Assembly: GCA_002189035.1 (NCBI GenBank) | Contig: NEEC01000029.1 | Location: forward strand, 186,001-250,000 | Source: Utricularia gibba | Taxonomy: Eukaryota; Plantae; Magnoliophyta | DNA length: 64,000 nt | Direction: 5' to 3' | In this document: positions 22,396-64,000 of the stretch, one piece after another | How positions within the stretch are numbered: the stretch's first letter is position 1 | Layout: each line of letters opens with the position of its first letter | Made by a program: the position numbers and the translations under genes | Notes under the pieces: generated by a model | Databases searched by the model: none | Told to the model about the DNA's origin: nothing | What the model saw: the letters and a program-made list of their open reading frames with translations, nothing else

Positions 22396-23602
22396 TCAGT
22401 TGTTCCCCCTTCCCCTGTGTGCAGAGTGCCGGCTTCCATTGTCACTACCGGCATCGTATCCGGCTAGAAACTGGTGATGTTGGTTATCCACCCCTGCGAA
22501 GAAGCTCACCGGAGAACCGTCGGAAAAGCTCTGTATGTGAGGCAACAATGAGGGCGAGGAAGAATTGGACTGAAGGGTCCCCCTGTTGAATCCGGCGAGG
22601 CCTGAAGAAGCAGCAGAAGATGAGATTGAGAAGGTCAGATTACTATACTCGTGGCTGCTTCCATTGTGTTGATTTGTATTTATATTTGAACCATTGACCA
22701 CTTGTACTAAGTGGTCAGGTACAAACGAATATTGTTGCAGCTCCGGTTGGTGGTCCCCCGCCGCTAATCCGAACATCGGCGAATAAAAACGGCTGTGGAT
22801 TTCTCCGCCGCGACCAGAAGGCGGCGGAGTTAGCAAACCAGAACACAAGTAATCCCATTGCTTTGAAGATTTCAGGAAGAAGCTTGAATCAGTCGCAGTA
22901 CCATCTGCGGCGGCGCCGGAGCTGGAATTCTCATGAACGGAGCTGTTGTTTGGGCTCGAACCACTTTTGTTTATTCCTCCACCTACTCCGTTGAGAAGCT
23001 CTGTGAATGAAGTTGTTCGAGAAATAGGATTATTTTTGTTCATAGACGCATTCTCCTTTTCCTTCTCCTTCTCTGCAACCCTTTCTTTTGCTCTTTCTCG
23101 AGCTTTAATCCTGATCTCGGATCTGGATAACGAAAGCCCGGAACCTTTACTAGTTTCAGAAGCGCTGCTACATGCTGACGACTTCGTGACCAACTGTTGA
23201 CGGAAGCTCGGATCTACGCCGCTGCCGCAGCCGTCCATTTCCACTTCCGCCGAGTCTAACCCGAGCTGATCGCTACCTCCTGTACTAGACTTCTTCTCGT
23301 CGCTGAGCTGATTCGGGGTCTCTGGGAACGCATTCGGAATTGGCGGCAGCTCAGCGATGGAACTCGCCGCCGCTTTCAATAACCACTCCACCGCCTTGCT
23401 CGGCTGGTCGTAGCCTAACCGATCTTGCAAATCGTAAAACTGGATTGCAGTGTTTACCGATAGCCGCACACGGCGGTCCCTCAGCCCCTTCGAAGTCAAA
23501 ACTTTGCTGTGTCTATCTTTCCCACCGGAAGCCCGTGAAACCCTAACGATTCGTGACGACGGCCAGGCGTAAAATCTCCCCATTGCCGCAGTAAATTCAA
23601 CT

Positions 23603-23634
<32 letters not shown>

Positions 23635-23781
23635 CCCGATTTTAGCACCGCTGCCTCTTTCACTTTCCCCTTCCGCCTCGTCGTCCTGAAACTGATCTTC
23701 CATTTTCTCATTCCCTGATTCTAACCTCCCATCTCCATTGTTACCTCTCTGAAACTTACATCGAATCCCATCTCCACCCAT
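22396..23781 (-). CDS. TCP2: CINCINNATA-class TCP transcription factor, TCP2/TCP24-like
   Basis: TCP domain [49 protein letters not shown] domain ([11 protein letters not shown]) and NRGTLQSN miR319 motif. Confidence 0.93.
22565..22584 (-). promoter_or_regulatory. miR319 target site within TCP CDS
   Basis: The mRNA sequence AGGGGGACCCTTCAGTCCAA is complementary to miR319 (UUGGACUGAAGGGAGCUCCC), with a perfect match to its first 13 nt. Confidence 0.9.
23603..23632. repeat. (CCG)10 microsatellite encoding poly-Gly in TCP
   Basis: Ten CCG units read directly from the sequence. Confidence 0.9.
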
Positions 23782-41914: not shown

Positions 41915-43624
41915 GTGGACTCTTGCATAGTCACAGAAATGCTCATCTTCTTCTTGCTTATACTCATTGCGTCGGTTGGGCCGTCGTTGACGCAACCAGC
42001 ATCGGATAAGTTCCACAACTGCGTTAAAGAAAAAAGCCAAACGCCGGTCAACTTTTCGGATGATTTGTCGGCGCCGGAGGACTCCTCATTCATCCCAATT
42101 CTCCAGTCCACCGCCCAGAACCTCCGGTGCTTGCTGCCCTCGGTGCCTAGGCCGCAGCTAATATTCAAACCCAGATACGATTCCCACATCCAGGCGGCTG
42201 TGATTTGCGCCAAAGAGGAGGGAATTCACCTCAGAGTACGCAGCGGCGGACATGATTACGAGTGCCTTTCTTATATTTCTGTGGCGCCGGAGGAGTTTGT
42301 GTTGCTCGATATGTCGAATATGCGTGCTGTGTCAGTGGATATACAGAGTGAAGGTGCTTGGGCTGATGCCGGGGCGACCATCGGAGAAGTTTACTACTGG
42401 ATTTCGAGGAGCAGTGGGGTGTATGGTTTCCCGGCGGGGCTCTATTCCAGTGTCGGGATAGGAGGATACATCTCCGGCGGCGGCTACGGTAGCATGATGA
42501 GGAAGTATGGCCTCGCTGCCGATAATGTTGTAGATGCGAAGATCGTTGATGCCGATGGCCGGATTCTTGATAGGGATGCCATGGGGGAAGACGTTTTCTG
42601 GGCGATCAGAGGCGGCGGTGGCGGCAGCTTTGGGATCATATTATCCTGGAAACTCAAGCTCGTTCCGGTCCCGAGAACAGTAACCGTTTTCACCGTGTCG
42701 AGAACGTGGGAGCAAGGCGCAGCGAAGATTCTTTACAAATGGCAACACATCGCCGATAAAATGGACGAAAATCTCTTCATAAGAGTAGTAGCAGAGCAAG
42801 CGAGTTCCACCATTTCAGGCGACAGAACGGTGGTTACTCTTTACAACGCGTTATTTCTCGGCGGAACCAATAAGCTTCTGAAGTTGATCGGAGAAAGCTT
42901 CCCTGAGTTGGGATTAACAAAAACCGACGCCATGGAAATGAGTTGGATCGATGCAGTTGTTTATATGGCCGGTTTCCCGGCGAACTCCACTGCGGAGATT
43001 CTCCTCCAGGGGAAACCTACATTCCGAAACGCCTTCAAAGCGAAATCAGACTTCGTAAGAAACCCAATTCCCGAAGCCGCAATCGGAGATCTCCTGAAAA
43101 AGCTGCTTGAAGACGATTCCCCTCGGATTATATTCACCCCATACGGCGGCGAAATGGGTCGAATACCGGAAACATCGACGCCGTTTCCCCACCGGAAAGG
43201 CGTCATCTGCAAAATTCAATACGTTTCAATGTGGAAAGATGACGACCCGACATCTGCATCGAAACATATGAACTGGACCAGGGGACTGTACGAGTTCGTG
43301 ACTCCTTATGTTTCATCGTCTCCCAGAGAGGCTTATGCTAACTACAAGGATCTTGATCTCGGAATGAACGGGGAAAACGGGAACACCTTTCCAGCAGCTT
43401 CTTCTTTCGGATTCAGCTATTTCAAGGACAACTTCATCCGACTGGTCGAGATCAAGACGAAGTTCGATCCTGATAACATCTTCAGACATGAACAGAGCAT
43501 TCCAACTTTTCAGCAGTTGTCACAGAATCTTGTTCCCACATCCAATAACCATCCTGGGGATCTCAAACTTGGAACAAATGGAAACTGGAACAGCTCAATT
43601 GCATTTAGATTCAGCTATTTCTAG
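41915..43624 (+). CDS. Berberine bridge enzyme-like FAD oxidase, intronless
   Basis: Signal peptide, RVRSGGHDYE, GGGYGSMMRKYGLAADNVVDA, FWAIRGGGGGSFGII, PREAYANYKDLDLG and DPDNIFRHEQSIP. Confidence 0.93.
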   Translation: MDSCIVTEMLIFFLLILIASVGPSLTQPASDKFHNCVKEKSQTPVNFSDDLSAPEDSSFIPILQSTAQNLRCLLPSVPRPQLIFKPRYDSHIQAAVICAKEEGIHLRVRSGGHDYECLSYISVAPEEFVLLDMSNMRAVSVDIQSEGAWADAGATIGEVYYWISRSSGVYGFPAGLYSSVGIGGYISGGGYGSMMRKYGLAADNVVDAKIVDADGRILDRDAMGEDVFWAIRGGGGGSFGIILSWKLKLVPVPRTVTVFTVSRTWEQGAAKILYKWQHIADKMDENLFIRVVAEQASSTISGDRTVVTLYNALFLGGTNKLLKLIGESFPELGLTKTDAMEMSWIDAVVYMAGFPANSTAEILLQGKPTFRNAFKAKSDFVRNPIPEAAIGDLLKKLLEDDSPRIIFTPYGGEMGRIPETSTPFPHRKGVICKIQYVSMWKDDDPTSASKHMNWTRGLYEFVTPYVSSSPREAYANYKDLDLGMNGENGNTFPAASSFGFSYFKDNFIRLVEIKTKFDPDNIFRHEQSIPTFQQLSQNLVPTSNNHPGDLKLGTNGNWNSSIAFRFSYF

Positions 43625-45826: not shown

Positions 45827-48800
45827 CTACCTCTTCAGTTTCCTAAGCTCAGGAGGTACATCAACATCCGCATACTCACCGGTGATTCTGTCAAAAGCCA
45901 TTAGCAGTATGAGTGGAACATCACTCACGGTTGCTCAGATGGCCCAGTTTCCATTGTTTTCAAAAGAACTCAGACAAGCAGAGCAAGGAGCTTGACAAGC
46001 CTTTACCTGTTGTATGATAAGAAGGCATCACCAATTTGTCCTATGACTTTGTTTCTCACCTTCCGGACGCAAACCTGTGGTTTTCAAAGAGTGTTGAGAA
46101 AAGTCGAAATGGGAGTTGTTACCAATCATCTAGGAGATGCATACCTGCACAAGATCGATGGGGAGGGCATCCGGACCCCGGTTGCGATCCCAGTTACGGT
46201 GGATTACAATCCCATTGTCACACTTGTTGTAGAAGTGTGCACTGCCGCTGATGTCGTATAGGTTTGGGGTTCACCGGCCCAGCCATGTAACTAGATATAA
46301 ACCCCAGATTAGGGAAAACGACACCTGGTAAAGTGCAAGCTTGTGAGGTGGCTAACCTGTCTAGGGTGAGCCACGAACCATACATGGCAAGCATGGTGCT
46401 GGGCAAATCGTTTGATTCTTGTCAGCAATTGACTTATGTATTCTGTCTCAGTCCTGTTCTCTGTCATGTTAGATAAGGAAGATAAACTGAAACTTCAGAC
46501 TAGGCAAAGCTGACAGGACTCACTGATTGGAATGACGTTGATGATCTAGCTCATTGTATGGATCAATTACAAGTCCGTTGACACCATGACGTAGTACTGC
46601 GATTTTTGCCAGTTCAAGAACCCAATTGATACTTGGGAGGCAATCGTTTTCACACCTGTTCCATGACATGGTATCCAAAGAATTATACAGTGAAGCAGTG
46701 GATGAGGGGAGGGGAGGATGATATTTCTGGATGCAATTCATGATCATTATAGAACCAAACCCTGTAAAAAACATGGTGATTTCGACAAAACCCATGGTTC
46801 AGTAAGGCAAAACTTGGACATTTTTTAAGTGTGTGTGTGAATTAAGATGCTCAGTTCCATGCAGAGATCAGGGAACCAATTACCTTATAAGATAAAATGT
46901 ATCACTAAGCCACCTCTTTCCTTCCTGTAATTCCTCCACTGTCATCCTCTCGACATTCTCCCCATACCTAAAATCAAAGGAAAGAGCAATGCTGACTCTA
47001 ATCTGTGATAACGACAATCACCATGAGATTTGGTGCCCGCTATTGTATCTTATATTTATTGAACACTTGTTTGATCAATGAAGTACCTAATATTAAAGAA
47101 AGGCTTCCTAACATGTTTTTCCAAAAGTTTTCTTGCATGCTCGCGAACCTGAAAAAGAAAAAATCAACTAAAACGAATAAATAAACCCTCGTGTCCAAAC
47201 TTGAAACAAGATGTGCAAGATGGCAAATGAAGGTTCAGCTCTCAAGCTGAACGACCCGCCCTTTTTTTTTTTTGAAGGGCTCGATCAAAATGCGATGCAT
47301 AGATACTGACACACCGAGACAAATATGAGTGCATGTAGGAGGGTTCAAGATATCAGCATCACAATTTCAACTTCCCAACTCTCAAAATAAATGCAGGACG
47401 ATACCTTGTTTTCCATAGAACAAAGTGCGAATTTCCACCCAGCACCGTGGTTTATGTTGCATAGTAAAGCATCAATCCACTCACTCTTTCCAGAATTTGG
47501 AACCCCAGTTACAATAGTGAGTTCTCCAGGAACCACCTGTAACAGTTTTCAATGTTCAAAGAGGTGGAGTACGTAAGCACAACACGAACTACCCCCTTCC
47601 AAAGATGGAGACACCAAAAACCCTTGAACATTAATTATATGACCACGCAATCTTTGAAAAGGGGGTATACAATGTCAGAGGTGAACAAATGGCAAAGCTT
47701 ACACTTACGTTATACAATGAGTTAAGACCTGTCCACCCAGTTGAGACACCAAGGTCATAACCAAGGGCGTGGTTGTAATAGTCATCAATCTCCTTGAAGT
47801 AATCTTTGAAGTTGAACAACCCTTTTATAGGATAAAGCTCAGCTTTTTCGACAACTTCCTTTAGTGCTTCAGGTCCCATGTAAGTTAGCACCTGATTTAA
47901 AAAAGATAGATTACAATGATTTCCAGCAAAAACATGTATTCCAGGTCTATTGCACATTCAAAATACAAGCTCTGAAGGCAATACTGGCTCATGGTGGTAT
48001 CACATTTCCATGAAGAAGAACCTTTGGTGCATCAGCCATTTCAGCAATTTGTTTAACAATTTTGGAGTTAGAAAGATAATGAGGGTAGACAGAAAACCAT
48101 AATATCAAACCTCATTTGCATCCTTATAACTCTCAGTGCCATCTTTTTTTTTCGGCCATTTGATCCTCCAACATCTGAGAAAGAAAACGATTTCAGCTCA
48201 CTCCAATTTCAATTGCAATTTTTGCATGAAAAATGCAGACAAGCATCCTGATAACATGACCTTTCTCTTCCCAAACGCCTGGCAAGTTCTTCGGCCAAAG
48301 CTTGACCAGGGGGATCAGCATCAGTTGCTAAAATTATACGTGAAGCCTTAAATGAAAGATAAAACCAACAAATAATTTTTCCAGGTGTATCTGCATACAG
48401 AATTTAAAGATAGCAACATAAAAAATGATCAAACCTTATCTATGTAATCCTTGCAGTTCCACAAGTACTGATATTTGATGTCCTGAACTCGGAAAGATGC
48501 AAAACATTAAAAAAAATGGTGGTACTGTAAAATGAACGAGCTTGCAGCTCCAGCAGACTATGTAATGTGTCAGGATTGGTACTTTTTCTTCAGGGGGTAA
48601 TTCTTTACTGGACACCTTTGAAGGGGCACCATCAGGCACACTAACACAATTTCGAAAGCCAGCCTCTTCCATTGCGAGTTTGTCCATCTCACCTTCAACC
48701 TGAAATGAGATACCAGGCAATATGTATATGTTGTTTGAATCAATGATATGTAACAAGCAAAGAGATGCCATTACGATTATGATGTCACTTGCTTCCTTTA

Positions 48801-50775
48801 CATCATCCAGTCCATAAAAAATCTTCTCAGTATTTGCTTCCTGAATTAAGAGAATAATCTAAATGAATCACAAATACAAAAAAAAAAAAAACAAAAAATG
48901 AATGTAGAGAGCCTTAAGAAATTCGTCAGTAAACAGAAAATTAGCATTTAAAAATATCAAATTCACAACCTGAATAATTAGAAGAGCATACCTGCCAAAA
49001 TTTCTTTGCACTGTCACGATACTTGCAACCTATCAGTTCTTTGTTCCTTCGGTAGGTGAAGGCAATCACAATCTGAGGATAAGAAATTATTTTTATAAGC
49101 AGCAGACACCTTAGGCGCATTTCAACAGCACCTTTTGTACACGTCCAAACTATCTTATTTCATCAACCATTGGGAGCCACCCAAAGAGCATTTACAAGCA
49201 CAAAGAAGATTTAAAAGGCACATGGTACAGTAATGTCCTTAAAGAAAATGAAAACAAGACCCGCACCTGATCACCATGTTTTCGCTGCATGACAAAATTT
49301 CTCCTCAATGTTTCTTCTGATATCATGCGCTCAGAAAAGTACGAAAGTAGCTACGGGAAAAGGCCATAAGAGAATGAGAAGGCTGAAATGTGGCATATAC
49401 ACAGTTGGAAAGATATGAGACAAACTAGCCATAAAATGGTGAATTTATCACACCTCCAAATGAGCAGAAAAAGTAAATCAGCAGCCACAGTACAAAAGAA
49501 GAGCTAAATACAAAAAAAAAAAAAAAAAAAAAAAAAGATTACCTGAGGACCCAGTGGTTCAAGATTTAAATCCTCCTCCGAGATCACTCTGGATGGCTCC
49601 TTTGCTACAGTACCACTCATTGCAAAATATGTTGACTTTGCATCTGCAAAAGGCTGAAAACAAGGCAGGATGAAATTACGAGCAGAATAGCACCAAATTC
49701 TCAACGAATTTAACAAAAAAAAAAAACCTACACGAGTAGTGCCTTGCCACCCACATTTAGCTCGAAAACAGTTCCACACTGCTGCTCCCCTAAAGCGCAT
49801 ACAGAAATCAGAGATTCTAAAATCAGAAATACATAGAGAAAATCTCAAGATATCCACAGTAAAAAAATTACCAATCATCATCAATGCGAAGAGACAAACT
49901 CCGCTCATGTGAATCCCCACCTTGACACTACAAAATCAAGAAGTTTAAAGCTCAGTTTCGAACACTGTGCAGACTCTGCATTAAATTGCCGGAGAACTAA
50001 AAAGGTGTAACAAAATTCCCTATTCAGTAACTTTGAGATGAAGGTAACAAACAGCTACATAAAAAGGGGAAGAGGTACAAAGCAAGAAAGTGGATAAGCA
50101 AAAACACGTACCATTGGGCATAATAAACCATTGTATTGTCCCGGTTTGTAATCCATGCCATCAATTCCAATTTCTCGCAGTTTCTGACCTAGAATACTGA
50201 ACTTCCTACCGCAGTCCGCGGTCTCCATATCGACGCTAGAGACTAGATTTGATGAATCATCATCAAGGTTTAAAAAAAAAGGATTCTTTCATTCAAATTA
50301 GACAGCGTGCGTGAAATCGAAGACGATGACTATAATTTATACACGAAAAAACTAAAAACAGAAGCAGAAAACACCACCATTGTGACGGAAAAACTTGTCA
50401 GAAAACGCGGAAAAAAAAAACATTGAGGCAAGGCCGACCCAGAATGGCAATCAACTTAATGAAACGAAATTGAATCATAAAACGCTTACTAGGTCTCGGA
50501 ACTGGCATAGCAGAAGCAGAACGGTAGCACAGGCCCCTCTGAAAAATGAGAGGAAAGCGCCTGGGTGAAGCGTAACCGACGCTGCTTTTCCACCCAGTGG
50601 AACAAAAGAAGCGAGATTGAGAACGCCAAAGATAACAACTGTCCAAAAAGCGGTTCTCTTGCTCAGAAACACCTGGAAAAGGCTTGACGAAGAAATTCTT
50701 GGATTCCATGAAAGTAACTGAATGACTATACAATTTACGGCTACAAAACAGCTTCCTCTGAGGAGGCAGAAGCAT
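45827..50775 (-). CDS. TWINKLE: Organellar DNA primase-helicase TWINKLE, many exons, one apparent frameshift at 46266-46269
   Basis: Transit peptide, zinc finger (LLCPM|CQGG...WNCFRAKCG), TOPRIM (VEGEMDKL), Walker A VTGVPNSGKSEW, LVIDPYNEL, WFVAHPR and ISGSAHFYNKCDNG. Confidence 0.92.
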
Positions 50776-50951
50776 ATCTCTAGTTCGCAAGCTCAAAAAC
50801 AGAGGAAAAAAACCATGAAAAATGAAGACGAAATTGAGGTTCTCAATTCCATGAAAGGGAAGTGCAGTGGGTTTAGGAATCGTTTGTATCCCTCTGCTCG
50901 CGCGTCAGCTATTCGTTTTCTGCGCTTTCTCAATGGGCTGCGCCGCAGTAG

Positions 50952-51292
50952 TTCAATGGGCCCAAGAAGAAAGAACGTGGGTTGGGCCGTTAAACATTAC
51001 GCATGCTCAAAATGTGACGGCCACCAATCCTGCCCTCTCTTTTTCATCATACGAAAACCGAAGGGTAGAGCCAGAGATTACCATCAATGGCTTGCTGTTA
51101 CATAACAGTTTCAAGATTGTATGTTGGGAATGCTGTGATGAGATTGTATACCAAGTGTGGATACATCGAAAATGCATTTGTTATCAATAACACATCGTAT
51201 TGTTATTAAGTTTGGGTTTCAAAGAGATGTTCAGGTGAACAATTCATTGCTTGACATGTATGCAAAACAACGAGATATGAACTCTGCAGAAA
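50952..51292 (+). pseudogene. Chimeric stub: OMA1-like promoter and first 11 codons fused to two fragments of the neighbouring PPR gene
   Basis: 50952-51118 matches the 5' regions of both OMA1-like copies. About 51116-51183 matches PPR 56487-56553 and about 51185-51292 matches PPR 56765-56870. Mini-ORF 51087-51209. Confidence 0.85.
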
Positions 51293-51737: not shown

Positions 51738-51807
51738 CGCCGGTGTCGTTCACCCTGTTGAAAAGGCGCAATGATGACGATAGTGTGTGTTCCAAGTACA
51801 TTTAAAT

Positions 51808-52011
51808 GATGGCCTTGGCGGGCAGAGGCGCGTGATGTGAGGTATTTCGAGGTCACGGTGGTGGGCCGTTGCACTTCAATGGGCCCTAACAAGAAAGAAC
51901 GTGGGTTGGGCCGTTATAACATTACACATGCTCAAAGTGTGACGTCCACCAATCCTTCCCTCTCTTTTTCATCATACGAAAACCGAAAGCTAGAGCCATA
52001 GATTACCATCA
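51808..52011 (+). promoter_or_regulatory. Duplicated promoter module of OMA1-like copy 1: primase-homolog 5' fragment plus three site II (TGGGCC) motifs
   Basis: 51808-51858 matches 55815-55865. The rest matches 62761-62912 and, in part, 50952-51086. Confidence 0.7.
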
Positions 52012-53452
52012 ATGGCTTCCTGTTACATAACAGGTTCAAGATTGATTTTGTATGGTGCATTCCCTCGAGACTCTGCCGCTAGAAACGACGTACCCGCAAA
52101 CCTATTTTTCTATCTCCGTTGTCGGCCGTGGAACCCCTTGTCCAGTTCTTCAAATGTGCTCCCAATTGGGCAACAGATTTTCAGAGACACTAGGATGCTG
52201 GCTACGAAAAGCCTATGGAAGAGCCATGATGCTGGTGGGTGGAAGAGATTTTTCGACGGCCGCAAGACACTCCTTAAGCACTTCGATAAGCCCAACGGAT
52301 GGTTCCCCATTGTTAGGGATACTTTGGTTGTAGTTGCCATGTTTGTCGCAGTCTCATGCGTGATCATCTGCCATGGGAAGGTGGTGACTACCCCTTATAT
52401 CAATAGAACCCAATATAGGCTTTTACCTCGTAGTTTCCACAGCACGGTCGCGGACATTGTGGTTGAGTGGAAAAAATATCAATACCGAGACCGAATTTTG
52501 TCTCCTCTTCATCCACTCAGTGTGGGTGTTGGGGCCATGGTACAGCGCATGGTTGATGAATTGCCCGAGGCGGGAGAGGTGCCCGTTTTGAGCTACTTAA
52601 GAAAGGCGATGGGGAGAGATACCAAGGATGATATTCTAGACGCATCAATGGGTAAGAGTACTGAGGTTGGTAATTTGGAAGGGGTGGCATGGGAAGTTAT
52701 TGTGGTTCATGATCTTTGTGTGAATGCTTATTGTTTAGCCAATGGTAAGATATTTATACATACCGGTATAATTGAGTGTTGTCAGACAGATGCTGAACTT
52801 GCAACTGTTCTTGCACATGAGGTAAAAAACAAACAAACATATTGGCTCTCTAGTCATATAATTACATGTTGGATTATGAGACATTTTTTATGTGCAGGTT
52901 GCGCATGTCTTCGCTGGCCACTTTGGCGAGGAGATGTTGTCGTTCATTATACACTACTTTCTTGAAAATAAACTTGCCATCGAAGTGGCTTCTGTGTTGT
53001 TTTATCTTCCACTTCTCCGAAGGTTGGTTATTTTACTACATTGTTGGAGTAGATAGGGAGATCCTTTACATCAACAAGTAACTTGTTTGGTTGCATGATA
53101 AGAGGGTAAATGACCCATTCTTGATGTTTGTAGGAACGAGATGGAGGCAGATCATATAGGGCTCATGCTAATGGCGTCAGCAGGTTACAATCCTCGAGCG
53201 GCTCCCAAATTACATAAGAGGATTGGGGGACGTTCAAAAGGCTATAAAGACTGCCTGGAAACTCATCCCTCAGGAGAGGAGAGAGCTGAAAATCTTTCCC
53301 GATACCAAGTTACGAACGAAGCTTGGGCCACATATACAAGAAGAAAAAGAAAGTGTAGAGGAGTCCACCCAAGGTCCCCCTATGCAAAATCTTTTTTTAA
53401 GGGAGCGTATGCTTGCATTCTTTGTGTTCTGGTGCTGCTGTTGGATGCTTAA
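52012..53452 (+). CDS. OMA1-like: OMA1-like mitochondrial M48 metalloprotease, divergent paralog 1, 3 exons, intact
   Basis: Exons 52012-52821, 52898-53022 and about 53134-53452. Motifs TPYINRT, LSPLHP, LEGVAWEVIVV, NAYCLANGKI, VLAHE|VAH (HExxH), EMEADHIGLMLMASAGYNP and THPSG. Confidence 0.88.
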
Positions 53453-53732
53453 CATATTTTCTTCGTGCCATTACATAGTTTATGAACCCCTGCAAGCCGC
53501 TTGGCTGTCTGCATGCAGCCTTTGTAGAGTGCATCAGCAACCTGATGACTAACAATGTCACAATTCACAAATAATTATAAATTTAAAATGAGTTAGAATC
53601 AAACGAACAACAATTTCTCCGTTCAAACTCGTTGAGTTGATGTCATCACATAGCATAGTTTGCCTACGGCTCCAGTATTCTAGAGATCACTAGAGTCTCC
53701 AGTGTAGATATGGTTCAACTACGGACAGCATA

Positions 53733-55852
53733 CTAAGCATTGCTGATGGTGTTGCATGGCTCTGCCTTTTGAATGGCTTCTCTCAAAGCTTCAGGGCCCA
53801 GAAACTGCAGAACCTGTGATTGAAGGACATAGTGAACAACACTGTTGGCCAACAGCTGTTTCAATCCAGCTGGTGAATCCAAATTAAGCAGAATTAAGTA
53901 AAGTTTTAACCTCGTTTGCATCTTTGAATGAACTGGAAGAATCCCTTTTTGGCCACTGGACTAGGAAGCATCTGCAGTGATCAACACAACAAGATATAGC
54001 GACCATTTTGATGGAGTGGCTGAAAAGAGATTGCGGTGTTCCACCTCTCCTTCCCTAGGCGGCAGCTGAGTTCCTGTGCTAGAGAGCGCCCTGGAAGATC
54101 CCCATCGGTTGCTAGAACAATTCGAGATGCCTGTAACAGATGGAATGAGAATGGTTGTTCATTTTCAAGTGCTCTGATTCAGATGTTTTGTTCAGGAAAG
54201 AACCTTATCGAAGTAGTGCTCACAGTTCCACAGGTACTGGAATCCGGTGTCCTGTTGCAAATTGGAAATGAAGCGATGAGTCAATACAAATGGAAGGATT
54301 TGCTGCAGCTTAAGATGTAAAGGTTCACCTTCTCCATTGCTGGCAGTTCTTTGAGTGAAACTGTTTGTGGTGCACCGGCAGGAACGCTGACACAGTTGCG
54401 AAAACCAGCTTCTTCGACAGAAAGCTTGTCCAATTCACCTTCAACCTACGAGCACCGAACTTCAAGATGATACAATACAAGGGATGTATTCACTAGAAGC
54501 AACTGATCATGGCCATTACAATTATGATCTCATCAGCTTCTTTGATGTCATCAAGTCCATAGAATATCTTTTCAGTGTTCTTTGCCTGCCAAAACCTCTT
54601 TGCGATTGTTCGGTATTTGCAGCCGACAAGGAGCCCCTCTCGTGTATATGTGAAGGCAATGATTTTCTATACCAAACAAACACATAGTCTCAGCTAATGA
54701 GTTGCACACATGATCCGCACCTGTTTCTAATGAAGTTCGATGTTGAAAGGAAACTGACCTCATCACAAACATCTTGCATTACATTGTTTCTTCTCAGTGT
54801 TTCCACAGATATCTTCCTTTCAGCAAAGTAAGCAAGCAACTGAGACATTCTCCATGAAACAACAACCAAAGATTAAGCAGCATCCTTCAAATTGATACTA
54901 ACAGCAAAGAGAAGACGGCCTTACCTCATTCCCTAAAGGTTCCAGTCTTCCCCTCTCAAACGCTAGCATTTGAGATGAATGGTTTTTCTTACCAGGTAGT
55001 TGTTCTCTATCTTCGAAAGATATCTACAAACAGGTTAAAAAAAGCTCATCTAAGCATATGCATCAGCGATGGAAAATCCAGATTTATGCAAGAAGCAGTG
55101 GCACCAAACACAATGGCATCAAAGATCAAGCAATAAGCATGGCCTTCACAATGCCTTCCTTAAGCGGAACAAGCCCGAGGCTCACCTTGTCCGCCCATCC
55201 GCACGATAAGTTGAAACATCTCCACAGTGCAAAACTCCTACAACAAGATACATTAGTCTAAAATCAGCATGAGGTGAAAACCATCACAACTCCAAAAATG
55301 CCACTTACAAATCCTGGGTGAGATGAAACGACAGCGTTTTCAAGCTCAAAGGTCCACCTTTGCACTACCCACAAGAATCATTATACACAAGAGTTTATGA
55401 AACTTGGAATGAATTTCCACAAGTTTTCCTGTAAAGAACTCATTGGAATAAAGAGAGATACCTTGGGGCAATACAATAGATTGTAGTTTCCAGGTGTGGA
55501 TGAGTCTACGTTCAGCCCCTGGGCCTCAAGTTTCGTTTGATGATCACCAACTTCCTCGGTCTCACCTACAATACAAAGAAACGAAAAAAAGTAAAGAGAA
55601 CGGAAATGCTGTCGTAGAAGGAGTCAGATTGCCACATATTTTATGATGAAAAGGAGAACCTGTTGATACAAATGGCCGCGATTGAGAAAAAAACCGGAAC
55701 CCATTACTGCGCACCGAAGCACTTGATGATGCCACAGACGAGAGCGACGGATAGCAGGGAAATCCTAAAGACTGCAATTTTGACGACGAACAGGTAGGTG
55801 AAAACCCTGGTAAGGATGGTCTTGGCGAGCAGATGCGCGTGATGTGAGGCAT
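53733..55852 (-). CDS. Primase homolog protein (TWINKLE paralog with zinc finger and TOPRIM, no helicase), intact
   Basis: Spliced in frame: ...LLYCPK|CKGG...|SFALWRCFNLSCGWADK|...|VEGELDKLSVEEAGFRNCVSVP|DTGFQYLWNC|ASRIVLATDGDLPG|...VLQFLGPEALREAIQKAEPCNTISNA*. Confidence 0.85.
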
Positions 55853-55972
55853 TTCGAGGTCACGGCGATGGCCACGCGGGTAGCGCGATGGATAAAACCG
55901 CTATTCAGGATAAATGGTTTCTTTTTTAAGATTGCTAAACCGTGGTTCTTCTTGACGGTATCGGAGTGAGAA

Positions 55973-58243
55973 ATGCACAAGAATGCTTCTAGTTTGGCGA
56001 ACTTGCTGCAGATATGCATAAACAATAAACTCCTTAAGGCAGGGAAGTTGATTCAGGCGCACATTCACCGTACAAGTCAGCTTTCCAACACTTTCCTAGT
56101 GAACCGTTTGATTCATTTGTACTTCAAATGCGGTTTCAGCGTTGGCGCACACTATCTGTTCGACCAAATGCCTACAAAAAACATATTCTCTTACCACGCA
56201 GTTTTAGATTCTTGCAGCAAGTCAAATGACGTGGCTGGTGCCTACAAGATATTCGAACAAATGCCAGAAAGGAATGAGGTATCGTGGAACTTACTAATAG
56301 GTATGTTCTCAAAAAGTGGTTTTAAAGACAAAGCCTTAGAAAGTTATTACTCCATGAGATTAGATGGTTTTATACCGACACACTTCACGTTGGCCAGTGT
56401 TCTGAGTGTTTGTGGGAGCATGGGCGATTTTGATTGCGGCAGGGAATGCCATGGGGTTGCTACAAAACTTGGGCTTGATGAAAATTTGTATGTTGGGAAT
56501 GCTGTGATGGGGTTGTATACCAAGTGTGGATACATCGAAGATGCATTTGCTATTCATGAGAGGCTACCTGAACATAACCAGATATCTTTTACTGCATTGA
56601 TGGAAGGGCTATTTGAGGCTGGTCGTGTCGATGAAGCACTGGATATGTTTAGGCTTATTCACAAGGCTGGGTCAGTAGATCGTGTTTCATTGCTAAGCGT
56701 ATTAGATGTTTGTTCATTTCTTGTAAATAGTGGCACTGAGGAGAGTTGTAGAATGCAGGGGAAACAAATACATTGTATTGTTGTTAAGCTTGGGTTTCAA
56801 AGAGATGTTCAGGTGAACAATTCATTGCTTGACATGTATGCAAAACAAGGAGATATGAACTCTGCAGAAAAGTTGTTCCTTAGTTCTCCTGGAGTCACTG
56901 TCGTTTCATGGAACATCATGATTTCAGGGTATGGCAATGTATACCAGAAAGACAAGGCGGTCGAATGCCTCAAAAAGATGCAGAGCAGTGGATTTGAGCC
57001 TGATGAGGTAACTCATGTTAATATGCTTTCAGCTTACTTGAAAAATGGCGATATTGAAGGAGGTCTTCAAGTATTCTATTGTATGTCATCACCAAGTCTA
57101 GCCTCATGGAATGCGGTACTATCGGGGTGTTTGCAGCACAACCGTGAAACTGAAGCAGTGACCCTTTTCAAAGAAATGATGCTGAGAAATATCACACCAG
57201 ATCGTACTACCTTTGCATCAGTTATCAGTGCTTATTCAAGCTTGGGGCTTTTGCAAGGGGGAAAGCAAATCCATGCTTGTTTATTGAAGACGGATTTTTG
57301 CACTGATCTGTATATATCAAGTGGGCTGATCAGTGTTTACTCAAAGTGTGCTGAAATAGAATTGGCCAAGCGTGTCTTCAACATGGTTGCTCCCAATCTT
57401 GACGTCGTTTGTTGGAATTCAATGTTAGCGGGTTTATCCATGAATTCAATGGAGATGGAAGCGTTTCTTCTCTTCCAGATGATGCTGAGGGAGGGGTTGA
57501 AGCCAACTGAGTTTTCTTGTGTCACATTACTCAATTGTGGATCTTCATTGACATCTCTGCCACTGGGGAAACAAATCCATGGATTGATGGTGAAAAATGG
57601 GCATGCAGATGATGTTTATGTAGGAACTGCACTGATCGATATGTATTGTAAATGCAGCGATGTCGAGAAAGCTAGATGGTTTTTCGACATTATGCCAGTG
57701 AAAAGCGTTGTCACCTGGAATGTGATGATACATGGCTATGCCCAAAATGGACAGGGAGAAGATGCTGTTAACCTGTTCAAGGAGATGACGTATTCAGGAC
57801 ATAAACCAGATACCATAACCTTTGTTGCAGTGTTGACAGCATGCAGTCATTCAGGATTGATAGATGCTGGATTGGAGATATTCAATTCCATGAAGGAAGA
57901 ACATGGTGTGGAGCCACTTACGGATCATTACACTTGTATAATCGACTCACTGTGTCGGTCCGGTTTGTTTACTGAGGTGGAACACATGGTTGACAAGATG
58001 CTATGCAAGGATGATCGCATCATATGGGAGGCATTGCTCAGTTCTTGTAGAGTTCATGGAAATGTGAAATTAGCAAGAAGAGCTGCGAATGAGCTCATTC
58101 TCCTCAACCACAAGGACCCTGCTCCGTACTCACTGCTAGCCAATATGTATTCATCTTTGGACAGGTGGGAAGATGTAAAAGAAGTTAGAAGCACAATGAA
58201 TGAATATAAGATCTCGAAGGAACCGGGTTATAGTTGGATCTAA
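55973..58243 (+). CDS. PLS-class pentatricopeptide repeat protein with E domain (no DYW), intronless, 756 aa
   Basis: Repeated PLS motifs (VSWNLLIG, GKQIH, VVTWNVMIHGYAQNG), HYTCIIDSLCRSG, IWEALLSSCRVHG and terminal KEPGYSWI. Confidence 0.95.
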   Translation: MHKNASSLANLLQICINNKLLKAGKLIQAHIHRTSQLSNTFLVNRLIHLYFKCGFSVGAHYLFDQMPTKNIFSYHAVLDSCSKSNDVAGAYKIFEQMPERNEVSWNLLIGMFSKSGFKDKALESYYSMRLDGFIPTHFTLASVLSVCGSMGDFDCGRECHGVATKLGLDENLYVGNAVMGLYTKCGYIEDAFAIHERLPEHNQISFTALMEGLFEAGRVDEALDMFRLIHKAGSVDRVSLLSVLDVCSFLVNSGTEESCRMQGKQIHCIVVKLGFQRDVQVNNSLLDMYAKQGDMNSAEKLFLSSPGVTVVSWNIMISGYGNVYQKDKAVECLKKMQSSGFEPDEVTHVNMLSAYLKNGDIEGGLQVFYCMSSPSLASWNAVLSGCLQHNRETEAVTLFKEMMLRNITPDRTTFASVISAYSSLGLLQGGKQIHACLLKTDFCTDLYISSGLISVYSKCAEIELAKRVFNMVAPNLDVVCWNSMLAGLSMNSMEMEAFLLFQMMLREGLKPTEFSCVTLLNCGSSLTSLPLGKQIHGLMVKNGHADDVYVGTALIDMYCKCSDVEKARWFFDIMPVKSVVTWNVMIHGYAQNGQGEDAVNLFKEMTYSGHKPDTITFVAVLTACSHSGLIDAGLEIFNSMKEEHGVEPLTDHYTCIIDSLCRSGLFTEVEHMVDKMLCKDDRIIWEALLSSCRVHGNVKLARRAANELILLNHKDPAPYSLLANMYSSLDRWEDVKEVRSTMNEYKISKEPGYSWI

Positions 58244-58366
58244 ACAACATAGTTGTACCCGTTGAGAAGGTTCTCAATGACTTCCAGCTTACATATAACA
58301 GAAACGAACACAACCGAGAACGCAAGACAAGCCTGAGTTGATATGTGCTCTGAGATTGCAATACAC

Positions 58367-59718
58367 TCACCAGGGAATTTCTTGTCCATCCCAAGCAAAG
58401 AACTTGCCACTGTCAGTAGCCTTGGCATTATTTATTACGGTCAGTAGCTTCTGAACTGAAAATTCTTTTGTGAACAATTTTCCTTCAGGGACATTGCTCT
58501 GGAAGGGCTTTGATAAATCTGTATCCACTGTTCCAGGATGCAAGAGTATACACACAATGGGATCCTTTTTCCTCATGAATTCCACGGTTACATTCTTTGT
58601 CACTGTTTGAAGATATAAAACAGAAATTTGTGAAGCAAACACTGCCTGAAGGAGAACATAGGAGCAACCGAAGTAGTATTTCTTACATTGATTGAGTGCA
58701 GTCTTTGAGGCCCGGTAAGAATGCCACCCCCAAGACCATTGTCTCCGATCGATCCGACTCGCGCACTTAAGTTTGCAACTACTGCAAAGTCTCTCTCAGT
58801 CCCATTTCCTCCTCCCAGCTTCAGCAGAGGCCACATATGCTTTTTCAGGCGAATCATGGCCACAGAGACAAAATGTGAGATTTCTCATGCTAAGTGACAC
58901 CTTCGAGCTGATTCAGCTTCAGCCCTGGTATAGTAGTTCTTACTTACATGCCATACCAGAACTGAAACCGATTGGCTTCCAAAAAGTCGAAAAATCGAAC
59001 AGCGGGGATGATACCTTGATGACCAAAATGGGGCCAACAGCATTCACCTCATAGGTAAGAAGCAAGGATTTCCTCTCAACTTTGTTCAGTGTCGTTTCTA
59101 TACTGAACAATCCACAGAAAGATGCAGTCACTAAACTGAAAAATTCTCAACTAGCATTGCAGTTGATATCTTTACCTGGCCTCAGAAGATTGGGTATCGA
59201 CAGAGTTCCAGATGCGTTTATGAGAAGATTCAGGTACTCATACTTCTCCTTCACCCATTTTGCAGTTTCCTGGAAAACTAACCATTTGCAGAATTAACCT
59301 TCTTTCCGCTGTTAAAACAGTGCAGAGTTCGTTTTTACCTCTATTGTACTATCAACTGTAAGATCCAGGCGACGAATGTCTAAGCGATCGGGAACTTATT
59401 CTTCAATTCCTGAAGCCCTATTGCCCCCTCTGGCGTACGGCACGTCGCCACAACTTGCCCTTTGTTGCTCTTCTCCAGCAATTGCTTAACCTAGCAGCAG
59501 CAGCAGCAACAGCGAATGAGACACGACCATTTGGGTATTGAATGAAGGTAGACAGACAGATCAATGGGACTCACGAATTCGAGTCCGATGCCTCTGGAGG
59601 CGCCTTGAACCAGTGAAATGCCGCCGTCCCATTTTCCAGCGGATGTAGAAAGCATTCGAACGGCCGGAAACATCCTCGTCGCCGACACTATCCGACCACC
59701 AAAATTCGCGTTCATCAT
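58367..59718 (-). CDS. C-factor/CsgA-like short-chain dehydrogenase, multi-exon, apparent frameshift at 59390-59392
   Basis: LVQGASRGIGLEF|VKQLL, EVNAVGPILVIK, VVANLSARVGSIGDN, LLHPGTVDTDLSKPFQ and DSGKFFAWDGQEIPW. Confidence 0.9.
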
Positions 59719-60987
59719 CGATCACGTTTCCGTTTCCATTTCCAAGAATTCTGGTAACTTAAACGCTGGCATAGCATCAAATATGTTCATGATCCGGAAG
59801 TAAACCACGTTTCAGTTTCCATTTCCAGGAATTTTAACACGACGTCGTTTTTACTCTCAAAAACAATAAAATTAGTGAATTTTAATCTCATCGAGACACT
59901 CAAGTTGCCGTAAGATAAAAATCAAATATATTACCCAATTTATGAATTGCTGATTTCTTTTATTATATAGACTTTAAATTAATATTAACAAAACCAATAA
60001 ACTTTATTGTTTAAATAAAAATACCAAAAAATGAATATATTCCCTCCCTAGCATGGGACCCGCACACCAAATTCAAGATTCATTGTTCACATCCATCCCC
60101 CTATGAAAAAAATCTTCCCTTGAATCTTGGTGAACTTGGGTATCACCATTTTTGTAAATCATTTACAAAATTAGTTCGTCATCACTTTTTCTCATACATT
60201 AAAACAAAAAATTAATCGTTAATTTGATCATTTTTATTACACATATATCAAAAAGTGGTAAGTTTTCTTAATGATTCATTTTTGTTGGCAATAGATAACT
60301 TAAACTAGATCTTGATTAGATTCTTTTTATCTTTGCAAATCACATAGAAAAAGCTCAACTCACTCACTATGGCACCCCCACCATTTGAAAATTTCTTTAG
60401 CAAAAGTCGCATCCTCTAGAGCATATGCATCAAAGTTGCTCTTGCACAAAGAAACAATGGGAATTTTGCAAAACTGATCAAGTGGTGTGATGGATTTGAC
60501 ACAACTGCCAGCCTCACTGTTGCCATCCCAATGGGCATGACTTGACATGGAGACTCTGTCTGTCGTCAATGAATGCATAGATCATGTAGCATGATCTCTT
60601 CATTCTTCACCAGGTACATCCATCCATACATGGCATCTACCACAATTTGTATCATTCTATGGTTGCAGTGCGTGATGATCTAGACGACATTTGTATCAGT
60701 GAGCCGTCTTGTTGTTGGCCCCCCTTTTGTCAACCGGAAACTTCTGCTTTTTCTCAGCTTTGTGTCCCATCCCACCAATATGCTGCTGCAGCAGCAGCCC
60801 ATTCCAAACCGCAATCCCCACAACTGCCCCAATGAAGAAACTGAGACCCATGGTGTGAACGAACCACCAAGTATTATACATTTTAAGACGACGACTGAAA
60901 TATGCGTACGTTGAAGGAGGTAGTAAAAGGTGTGTACATTGAAGAGGAGGCTAAACTGTACATCTGTTAACAGTTCCGACCGTGAAC

Positions 60988-62254
60988 TTAATCCGCCTTT
61001 TCCGGTGGAGGCGAATGATCCCAATCCAAACTGAAGAAGCTACTAAAAGGGGTGTTTGGTGGGCCTCCGCGGCCGTCGACGGAGAAGCCACGAGCAAACA
61101 ATGTTTCGAGGGAATCGAGAAGGATATCGTCGGCGTAGTGATTTGAGTCCGGGGGGTTGTGGATGGGCTATTGATGCCTAGTTCTTTCTTCACGGCGGCG
61201 AACCATCCATTTCCGCCGGGTTCTGAGGCTTCCTCATAGTCGGAGATCTTGTCTGGCCGGCGAAAGCGTTCCTTTGCGTCGGCCAGTGATGGTTGTGCTC
61301 CGAGGAGTAAGTGATCACCAGCATGTTTGGATCGGTCCGACTTCGCTCGACTTGCTTCCTCGCGGCGCATCCCTTTGAACTGCTGCATTTGTAGTAAGCC
61401 CTAAAGATGCTTGAAACAATCAGATGATATCGTCATTTTTGGATAATTCACTTGTTGTTGCTCACCTTGGAAAGGGAGAGCCTTTGATGGGCTTCTGTCC
61501 GTACTTCCTCCACGCCCAGAGATCCGACGGCACAACCTCGCCACCTGACCTGGCGTTCGCAGGCAGCGGCACCGGAATACAAACTACCTTCTTCGCCTGG
61601 TTTTTTCTGATAACATCAAAATACTGTAATCAGAAGTGACGCAAATTTTCCGAACTGAGACAAAAACCCTTTTCGCATCGTCACAAAAGCCGGAAAACAC
61701 GGAGAAATGTGTAAGAAGAAAGTGCTGAAGAAGTGAAATGAAAAGCTACGTCGTTTCATCATAAGCTCTGAACCCTATATCGAAAACCCAGTTCTTGAAA
61801 ACTGCATGCGATTTATATACAAACCATAACTTCAACTTCCCCACCTTCTCTTAGTCCCCGTGTTTCGCGGAGACGAGATCTGCGTATCTGGGCCGTCCAT
61901 TTTCTGCTTACTAATCGAAATCCCATCACTATGAACCAATGGACGCTTCTGTGCCGCCGGAGGATCTCCAAACGGCGGCTCCACCCCCATCGATAACCCC
62001 ACTCCCCCTTCATGGAACCCTGGTCTATAGAAACTGGAAGCCTGCAGAAACCCTGAGCCTCGCGTTTCGGTATCACTAAGAAGAGGATCTCTAAAATGGA
62101 TAAACGGGTCCCCGAACTCCTCATCCGGGTAAGCTAGAAAGTTCATCGGAAACTCCCATGACCCCGCTTCTTCCGCTCCCCAGCTTCCTCCTCCGCCGCC
62201 GCCGTTGCCAGCTCGAATGATATCGGCCAAATCCCCCTGATATTTATTCTCCAT
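60988..62254 (-). CDS. WRKY: WRKY transcription factor, group IIe (WRKY14/35-like), 3 exons; exon 3 appears to carry two 1-bp deletions
   Basis: [49 protein letters not shown]|[37 protein letters not shown]. The C-terminal boundary is inferred across frameshifts. Confidence 0.88.
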
Positions 62255-62619
62255 CCAATGACCACACACGAAGAAGAAGAAGGGAGTAACTATTCAGTAA
62301 CAGACAAAGGAAAGCAGAGCTTGAAGAACTCTAACTCATACGCAAGCCAAAGGTTCTATTTATTTAAATCATTTAAAAAATAAATTGGTCAAATTTTTTA
62401 ATTTGTCTTAACTGGACTTCCTCCCCATGTGACACCAAACCATTATCCAATCCAGTTTGTTGAAAAATATGACGATATATAATTATTTAATCACGTAATA
62501 AATGATGTAATGACCACATCAACCACTCGTCGATTACTACGTCTCACCATTTTTTCCATTTAATTAACCTAATCTAAAGAATTATCAACGCCATTAGTTT
62601 AATCCTAAAGTAATATTTT

Positions 62620-62912
62620 GAAAGCATTCGAACGGCCTGGAACATCATCCTAGCCGACACTATCCGACCACAAAAATTCGGGTTCATCGTCGATCACGTT
62701 TCCGGGTAAGGATGGTGCCGGCGAGCAGAGGCCGTGACGTGAGGCATTTCGAGGTAACGGTAGTGGGCCGTTGCACTTCAATGGGCCCCAACAAAATTGA
62801 ACGTGGGTTGGGCCTTTAAAATATTACACATGCTCAAAGTGTGGCGGCCACCATCCTTCCCTCACTTTTTCATCAAACGAAAACCGAAAGGTAGGGCCAG
62901 AGATTACCATCA
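62620..62912 (+). promoter_or_regulatory. Mosaic promoter of OMA1-like copy 2: SDR 5' fragment, primase-homolog 5' fragment and site II module
   Basis: 62620-62704 matches 59648-59732; 62705-62760 matches 55809-55865; the rest matches 51859-52011. Confidence 0.75.
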
Positions 62913-64000
62913 ATGGCTTCTTGTTACATGAAAGGTTCAAGATTGATTTTTTATGGTGCATTCCCTCGAGACTCTGCCAACATCGTACCCACAAACCTAT
63001 TTTTCTATCCCCGTCGTCGGCCGTCGAACCCCTTGTCCAGTTCTTCAAATGTGCTCCCAATTGGGCGACAGATTTTCAGGGACACTAGGATGCTGGCTGC
63101 GAAAAGCCTATGGAAGAGCCATGATGCTGGTGGGTGGAAGAGATTTTTCGACGGCCGCCAGACACAACTTAAGCACTTCGATAAGCCCAACGGATGGTTT
63201 CCCATTGTTAGGAATACTTTGATTGTAGTTGCCATGTTTGTCGCAGTCTCATGCGTGATCATATGCCGTGGGATTGTAGTGATTACCCCTTATACGAATA
63301 GAACCCAGTGCGGGCTTTTACCTCGTAGTTTCCTCAGGACGGTCGCGGACGTTGCGGTTGAGTGGATAAAATATGAATACGGAGACCGAGTTTTGTCTCC
63401 TCTTCATCCAGATAGTGTGAGGGTTGGGGCCATAGCACAGCGCATAATTGATGAATTGCCCAGGGCGAGAAAGGTGCCCGTTTTGAGCTACTTAAGAAAG
63501 GCGTTGGGGAGAGATACCAAGGATGATACTCTAGACGCATCAATGAGTAAGAGTACTGTGGTTGGTGACCGAAAAAATAAGTATTTGGAAGGGGTGGCTT
63601 GGGAAGTTATTTTGGTTGATGATCCTTCTGATGAGGCTTATTGTTTACCCAATGGTAAGATATTTATGTATACCGGTATGCTTGAGTTTTGTCGGACAGA
63701 TGCTGAAGTTGCAGCTGTTCTTGCACACGAGGTAAAAAAGCAAACAAACACATTGGCTCTCTAGTGATATAATTACATGTTGGATTATGGGACATTTTTT
63801 ATGTGCAGGTCGCGCATGTCTTCGCTGGCCACTCTGGCGAGAAGATATTGTTGTGGTTGATTATACGATGCTTTCTTGTAAATGAACTTGCTATCGAAGT
63901 GGCTAATGTGTTGTTATTTCTTCCGCTTTCTCGAAGGTTGGTGATTTTATTACTTGTTTGGTGGTTTGCTTGCAGTGGATTTGATTCCATGGTGTTTGGC
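62913..64000 (+). CDS. OMA1-like: OMA1-like M48 metalloprotease, divergent paralog 2 (exons 1-2 visible, truncated by the window end)
   Basis: Exon 1 62913-63731 ends VLAHE; exon 2 from 63809 begins VAHVFAGH. Same intron positions as copy 1. Confidence 0.88.

Follow-up and report, generated by a model that had tools for sequence, protein, structure and literature searches.

Two fast-diverging OMA1-like peptidase genes in a 64,000-nucleotide stretch of the Utricularia gibba genome

The stretch of the Utricularia gibba genome analysed here (contig NEEC01000029.1, positions 186,001 to 250,000; hereafter the window) comprises 64,000 nucleotides (nt). At its end lie two homologues, copy A and copy B, plant genes whose introns are of the GT..AG type and which encode OMA1-like peptidases of the M48 family. 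The two genes belong to a lineage-specific, highly diverged OMA1-like family in this Lamiales plant and are not the housekeeping Oma1. The ratio of replacement to synonymous divergence between them (dN/dS, omega) is clearly near or above 1, and far over the value of approximately 0.1-0.22 published for the conserved canonical Oma1 (PMC7846149). As it stands, the evidence shows that the genes evolve rapidly, at close to the neutral rate, and that their reading frame is preserved. Positive selection is possible but unproven, and adaptive diversification is not established by these data.

Copies A and B and their family

Copy A (52012-53452, plus strand) comprises three exons and encodes a product of 417 amino acids (aa). 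Copy B starts at position 62913 on the same strand and leaves the window within intron 2. The homology between the two genes begins approximately 207 nt 5' of each ATG (51805 and 62708, respectively) and extends over about 1.25 kb with 88% identity. Exons 1 and 2 together measure 935 nt in copy A and 947 nt in copy B and leave an identical phase. A transmembrane (TM) helix is located near aa 104-122 of copy A, with a hydropathy peak at residues 96-130. In RNA contigs, the end of copy B exon 2, TTTCTCGA, is joined to an exon 3 that is nearly identical to positions 53132-53208 of copy A (0-1 differences). When unspliced contigs are considered as well, the end of intron 2 and the start of exon 3 of copy B exhibit at most 1 difference from copy A over 53094-53208. 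Residues 395-417 of copy A (53380-53449) form a hydrophobic tail, YAKSFFKGAYACILCVLVLLLDA, and the C-termini of canonical plant OMA1 proteins are devoid of such a tail. This tail may be an extra membrane segment or a read-through into non-homologous sequence.

The Peptidase_M48 profile (PF01435) matched exon 1 of copy A (E 9e-10), exon 1 of copy B (E 8e-9) and exon 3 of copy A (E 4e-8, profile positions 139-184), all above the curated cut-off. Both copies contain HEVAH, which corresponds to the HExxH zinc motif and straddles the junction between exons 1 and 2. The third zinc ligand of copy A is present in the motif RRNEMEADHIG, at the start of exon 3. For copy B the evidence for NEMEAD is indirect, the motif being encoded in the exon 3 that is joined to its exon 2 in RNA contigs.

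An exhaustive HMMER search of 1.84 billion representative proteins yielded a best match with 36% identity (E 5e-18). The closest relatives were 30-36% identical, and no relative above 36% was found among these representatives. The named matches were plant proteins annotated as 'mitochondrial metalloendopeptidase OMA1' or as OMA1-like, and we infer a mitochondrial target for copies A and B. A word-indexed protein search with exon 1 of copy A returned no match. As all relatives are at most 36% identical, there is no close outgroup for polarising changes at the nucleotide level or for branch models. In the protein tree, the common stem of copies A and B measures 1.67 substitutions per site, compared with a median tip of 0.56, and the tips of copies A and B measure 0.19 and 0.094, respectively. 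As this stem is three times the median tip, the housekeeping regime was left long before the duplication that produced the two copies. The low identity, the long stem and a pairwise omega of 1.15-1.95 set both copies apart from canonical plant Oma1.

The family extends beyond these two genes. A truncated third copy (50939-51119) groups with copy A: three-way site counts gave 12 sites at which copy A agrees with the fragment, 3 at which copy B does, and 12 at which copies A and B agree. After the split between copy A and the fragment, the promoter changed at 3 sites in copy A and at 12 in the dead fragment. Furthermore, at 51960-52281 and 53158-53277, DNA and RNA contigs show variant patterns that match neither copy; these include a different start region as well as two forms of exon 3, which have 9 and 13 differences. 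These patterns indicate that the genome contains more members of the family, some of which are expressed.

Divergence between the copies

A preliminary description of the window had counted codon differences by hand in two aligned blocks, and both counts were reproduced exactly: 7 replacement and 0 synonymous codons between 52561-52671 and 63456-63566, and 15 replacement and 2 synonymous codons between 52681-52821 and 63591-63731. Its count for intron 1 (76 versus 77 nt, 3 substitutions and 1 indel) also holds, and the GT..AG introns and their phase agree with its statement that both copies keep HEVAH and splice in frame. The full comparison covers 309 aligned codons and revealed 98 nt differences, distributed 33/33/32 over the three codon positions, with 70 replacement and 11 synonymous codon differences. 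Three coding indels, of 6, 15 and 3 nt, leave the frame intact, and two of them, the 6-nt indel at 52078 and the 15-nt indel at 52671/63567, are diagnostic of the copies.

These differences are not read or assembly errors, a possibility that the preliminary description had named as fatal to its proposal. Contigs from a separate DNA run are 100% identical to copy A across 52349-53135 and 53114-53700. Other contigs of independent DNA have the letters of copy B together with its specific insertion at 52671/52672. Relative to the window and the RNA contig, this insertion lacks one A in the DNA contigs.

The pairwise dN/dS was 1.39 with NG86, 1.15 with LWL85, 1.65 with YN00 and 1.81 with maximum likelihood, and our own Goldman-Yang (GY94) fit gave an omega of 1.82-1.95. 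The corresponding dN was approximately 0.11-0.13 and dS approximately 0.07-0.10. A likelihood-ratio test of the GY94 fit against omega=1 gave a statistic of 4.7-6.0 (p 0.015-0.031). In neutral Monte-Carlo simulations, in which only stop codons were forbidden, with a kappa of 2-3 and 0-15% tandem double mutations, 18-21.5 synonymous codon differences were expected, compared with the 11 observed (P 0.005-0.03). This deficit of synonymous codons persisted with 10-15% tandem double mutations. The pairwise estimate over the 309 codons, proposed earlier as a check, lies at 1.15-1.95 and exceeds 1 only nominally. With regard to the 'strong excess' of replacements claimed from the two blocks, a rate at or above the neutral one is observed, but the strength of the excess is not robust across tests (p 0.005-0.03 versus 0.11-0.51).

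Copy B is transcribed and spliced. Its sampled words were recovered in RNA runs of three studies, at 0.34-0.48 in five runs from two studies and at 0.10 in one run from the third. B-type RNA contigs, the 15-nt insertion included, were obtained from two of these studies, and intron 1 is removed exactly in the RNA contig (76-nt skip, GT..AG). The words of copy A reached 0.03-0.06 in RNA runs, a level compatible with words common to copy B, and no A-type contig was found in the diagnostic region among the RNA contigs searched. As contigs lose rare variants, this result points to low expression of copy A rather than to its absence. A lack of expression, which would have spoken against the earlier proposal, is thus contradicted for copy B, while copy A was not seen in RNA contigs.

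Explanations and comparison with known Oma1 systems

The explanation that we moderately favour is that of a diverged OMA1-like family on which relaxed constraint and some positive or diversifying selection act together. The family would have grown by local duplication, with pieces scattered nearby, and its exit from the slow housekeeping regime would long predate the split between copies A and B. Since this split, the rate of replacement would have equalled or slightly exceeded the neutral one (omega of approximately 1.4-1.9), without loss of the reading frame, of the splice sites or of the TM helix, and with both zinc-binding motifs (HExxH and NEMEAD) intact. Constraint would be most relaxed on copy A, whose losses of conserved residues are three times those of copy B and for which no RNA contig was detected. 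Positive or diversifying selection would contribute to some extent in the soluble part after the TM helix and in the segment between HExxH and NEMEAD, as in RF-Oma1 of sugar beet. Changes are concentrated in two regions, aa 123-270, which follow the TM helix, and exon 2, lying between the HExxH and NEMEAD motifs.

Several observations weigh against a role for selection. An omega above 1 is only nominally observed and is not robust across tests: the NG86-based Fisher test gave p 0.31, and the isolated single differences (41 replacement to 10 synonymous) gave p 0.11-0.18. Replacement sites are 11.2% diverged, compared with 9.6% for the pooled non-coding flanks (p 0.51). Adjacent differences are in excess (19 versus 10.2 expected, P 0.004), and such multi-nucleotide changes are a known inflator of dN/dS. 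The comparison comprises a single pair of genes and 309 codons only, and as the feature was chosen by eye from a large scan, a p of about 0.02 carries a selection effect. Along the gene, dS covaries with dN (Spearman rho 0.71, p 0.047), which indicates a mosaic history, so that a part of the pattern stems from mosaic ages or from gene conversion. The TM helix, a hot spot in beet, is conserved here, and to our knowledge no function or partner has been reported for copies A and B.

The preliminary description had proposed diversifying selection rather than decay. The second half of this claim is supported: the conservation of the frame, the splice sites and the catalytic motif argues against plain decay, and simple decay is unlikely. 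No stop codon arose in the 309 codons, whereas the chance of this outcome after 98 random substitutions is approximately 0.05. The indels are in frame, and the splice sites, HEVAH, the TM helix and an N-terminal block of about 60 codons are preserved. The first half is weaker, as selection is only nominally supported and relaxed constraint is apparent on copy A. With 27 plant OMA1 proteins as reference, we polarised the 70 amino-acid differences. Of these, 46 lie at positions that are variable among OMA1s; the 24 polarisable ones, at conserved positions, are derived in copy A in 18 cases and in copy B in 6 (binomial p 0.023). The derived changes include CLP to CLA and PFSRR to PLLRR in copy A, and VNA to DEA in copy B. 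The loss of conserved residues in copy A, together with the lack of an A-type RNA contig, indicates that relaxed constraint on this copy explains part of the signal.

The strongest competitor, which we consider tenable but distinctly less probable than joint action, is that relaxed constraint explains the whole signal. The family, or at least copy A, would have become dispensable after the duplication and would drift with omega close to 1; sampling noise and clustered multi-nucleotide mutations would lift the point estimate above this value. The open frames would reflect a brief elapsed time or a weak selection against truncation only. The even distribution of differences over codon positions, a replacement divergence equal to that of the non-coding flanks, the NG86 and isolated-change tests, the excess of adjacent changes and the asymmetric loss of conserved residues with no A-type RNA contig are all in line with this explanation, as are the many radical replacements in motifs conserved among plant OMA1s, such as those cited above for copy A. 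However, the likelihood-ratio test and the Monte-Carlo simulations place omega=1 at p 0.005-0.03, multi-nucleotide mutations included. Pure relaxation also fits less well with the absence of stop codons, the three in-frame indels and the retention of HEVAH, NEMEAD, the splice sites and the N-terminal block, nor does it agree with the transcription and proper splicing of copy B. The lower number of promoter changes in copy A than in the dead fragment since their split is a small counter-hint.

A second competitor, which we regard as improbable, is that copies A and B are old duplicates that have been partly homogenised (in intron 1, codons 41-120 and the start of exon 3), so that the contrasts reflect the ages of tracts and not selection. 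The divergence is indeed heterogeneous, with 11 differences in 240 nt for codons 41-120 and 77 in 567 nt for codons 121-309. For aligned codons 281-309, dN is 0.258 and dS 0.192. The end of intron 2 and the start of exon 3 of copy B are nearly identical to those of copy A, yet exon 2 is 15% diverged. In addition, dS follows dN along the gene, copy-to-copy recombination is documented in beet RF-Oma1, and further copies and fragments are available as possible donors. The mosaic pattern fits gene conversion or recombination among copies, as in the beet genes. Nevertheless, conversion affects synonymous and nonsynonymous sites alike; it explains the contrast between intron and exons but leaves the synonymous shortage in the diverged segments unaccounted for. 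Moreover, intron 1 would be a 76-nt island between exons that are 14-15% diverged, which is an odd shape for a tract, and its low divergence (3.9% over 76 nt) does not differ significantly from that of the flank or the exons (p 0.07-0.10). The 'young duplication' proposed earlier is not upheld by the wider comparison: it relied on this single intron of 76 nt, whereas the 207-nt upstream flank is 11.7% diverged, equal to the replacement sites, intron 2 is unalignable beyond approximately 22 nt, and the divergence is mosaic.

That the differences are assembly or read errors, or collapsed haplotypes, is hardly credible. Copy B is incomplete at the end of the window, but no support for an artefact was found; the separate DNA run reproduces copy A exactly as well as the B variants, and RNA contigs from two studies contain the B variants and the 15-nt insertion.

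The closest known parallel is the Rf1 locus of sugar beet, a cluster of lineage-specific Oma1 paralogs named RF-Oma1 (bvORF20/orf20; PMC7846149), described by Matsuhira 2012 and Arakawa et al. 2019 (PMC6894571) and 2020 (PMC7846149, PMC7607634). RF-Oma1 has been selected for binding a mitochondrial partner protein, restores fertility against male-sterility mitochondria and shows recombination among copies. Its M0 omega is 2.45, the comparison of M7 with M8 gives P 2e-33, and 37 codons are positively selected, 26 of them in TM helices (PMC7846149). Rapid replacement had been presented in the preliminary description as unusual for a conserved housekeeping protease. This does not apply here, as the genes are diverged lineage-specific paralogs and a dN/dS above 1 has already been published for RF-Oma1 (PMC7846149).

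The genes of the window resemble RF-Oma1 in being lineage-specific diverged Oma1 paralogs that are clustered, with copy-number complexity and three exons separated by two introns. In both, evolution is much faster than in canonical Oma1, dN/dS reaches or exceeds 1, copies differ by in-frame indels, and there are traces of recombination or mosaicism. In contrast, RF-Oma1 is found in Caryophyllales and is reported to be unique to Beta vulgaris, whereas copies A and B are from Lamiales. The beet proteins exhibit HQVGH (PMC6894571) and have lost the catalytic Glu, which makes them chaperone-like, whereas copies A and B keep HEVAH. The hot spots of RF-Oma1 are in TM helices, whereas the N-terminal TM helix of copies A and B is conserved, and positive selection is supported by site models in beet but only nominally, from one pair, here. 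We know of no cytoplasmic male sterility system in this plant. The possibility that the window is the beet Rf1 locus itself was rejected: the published RF-Oma1 primers, exon and 3' untranslated region sequences had no match in it (approximately 1 mismatch in 6 allowed), and the flanking pentatricopeptide repeat (PPR) gene points to Lamiales. In view of these likenesses and differences, the family of copies A and B is best read as an independent analogue of the beet RF-Oma1 genes.

Among other systems, canonical OMA1 (AtOMA1 At5g51740, bvOma1) shares with copies A and B the M48 domain, HExxH, the downstream Glu motif, the N-terminal TM helix and the intron number reported for the beet genes. 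It differs in being conserved, whereas copies A and B are characterised by their low identity, their long stem and, in copy A, the novel hydrophobic C-terminal tail. The diverged-type Oma1 genes, which occur sporadically in Medicago, Helianthus, Fragaria, Eucalyptus, rice and barley (PMC7846149 Table 1), are similar in being lineage-specific extra copies with low similarity to AtOMA1. The Lamiales sampled in that study comprise Sesamum only, with two conserved copies, and no Lentibulariaceae, and the selection regimes of the diverged-type genes were not analysed (PMC7846149). Our literature search for Utricularia and OMA1 found no relevant paper. Rf-like PPR (RFL) genes are comparable: located in the nucleus, they encode mitochondrial proteins, form clusters that vary in copy number and have a dN/dS above 1, attributed to nuclear-mitochondrial conflict. 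However, they constitute an unrelated protein family, and the PPR gene located between copies A and B is of the E class and not an RFL.

It is conceivable, although rather unlikely, that the array is an independent OMA1-type locus of cytonuclear conflict in this carnivorous Lamiales lineage, with an intact catalytic HExxH. If so, its products could be proteolytically active, fast-diversifying suppressors or modifiers of a fast-evolving mitochondrial protein, such as a male-sterility factor or a part of the unusual respiratory chain of bladderworts. Oma1 duplicates would then have been drawn convergently into nuclear-mitochondrial arms races. If confirmed, this would be the second plant lineage, after sugar beet, in which an Oma1 duplicate gave rise to a clustered, fast-diversifying family. 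With the catalytic motif kept, Oma1 duplicates would appear as recurrent raw material for nuclear-mitochondrial co-evolution, beside the Rf-like PPR genes, and a compact genome would be available in which to study this co-evolution.

Features and neighbouring genes in the window

The coordinates of the OMA1-like genes and of the features identified elsewhere in the window are given in Table 1.

Table 1 Coordinates of the OMA1-like copies and of other features of the window
Feature	Coordinates	Strand	Evidence and remarks
Copy A upstream region, promoter/5' leader	51805..52011	+	24 mismatches and 2 gap events in 207 nt versus 62708-62912, 11.7%
Copy A exon 1, 270 codons: N-terminal region, TM helix, first half of M48 domain up to HE of HEVAH	52012..52821	+	Open frame from ATG; PF01435
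Copy A intron 1, 76 nt, GT..AG	52822..52897	+	Frame kept on removal; same 76 nt skipped in B-type RNA contig
Copy A exon 2, 125 nt, most diverged segment	52898..53022	+	15.2% nt divergence versus copy B exon 2
Copy A intron 2, 111 nt	53023..53133	+	Only the splice 53022/53134 keeps the frame and yields NEMEAD
Copy A exon 3 and stop: NEMEAD third zinc-ligand motif, C-terminal M48 part, hydrophobic tail	53134..53452 (coding to 53449)	+	PF01435
Copy B upstream region	62708..62912	+	Alignment to copy A upstream region
Copy B exon 1, 273 codons, expressed	62913..63731	+	Open frame; PF01435; RNA
Copy B intron 1, 77 nt	63732..63808	+	3 substitutions and 1 indel versus copy A; absent (spliced) from B-type RNA contig
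Copy B exon 2, 128 nt, 3-nt in-frame insertion versus copy A	63809..63936	+	Ends ...TTTCTCGA; RNA contigs join this end to A-like exon 3
Copy B intron 2 start, gene runs past window end	63937..64000	+	Unspliced contig ties GTGGATTTGATTCCATGGTGTTTGGC to A-like 53094-53161
Truncated third copy, promoter and first 33 nt of coding sequence, then unrelated sequence	50939..51119	+	90.7% identity to 51862-52044, 85.2% to 62764-62945
CHX-type cation/H+ antiporter	2542-4825		Pfam
Carotenoid cleavage dioxygenase (RPE65 family)	15392-16492		Pfam
TCP transcription factor	22396-23781		Pfam
Berberine-bridge-enzyme-like oxidase	41915-43624		Pfam

The PPR gene between copies A and B (55973-58243, plus strand) is intact, consists of a single exon and encodes an E-class protein of 756 aa, the ortholog of At4g20770. 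Its best named matches are all from Lamiales, with 62-67% identity (62% for Genlisea), which places the genome in this order. An identity of only 62-67% to other Lamiales suggests a fast-evolving lineage. An exact look-up of the protein returned no record. Pfam scans of the short open reading frames between copies A and B gave mostly no match.

Two stretches on the minus strand, 48432-48834 and 54201-54579, are diverged paralogs with 67-78% identity. The first has a weak Toprim match, which suggests a primase/Twinkle-like gene, and this gene seems to have been duplicated together with the OMA1-like genes.

A segment of some 60 nt recurs at 51805-51864, 55806-55871 and 62702-62760; it is found in the 5' flank of each OMA1-like gene and, in addition, at the 5' end of a minus-strand gene at 53.5-55.9 kb. 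RNA contigs ending in 53600-53700 hold a related copy of this segment, with 4 differences from 51808-51858. Pieces of a bidirectional promoter or of a 5' untranslated region seem to have been shuffled along with the duplications. Finally, an 85-nt direct repeat is present at 59648-59732 and 62620-62704 with 90% identity, and its second unit ends immediately 5' of the homologous flank of copy B.

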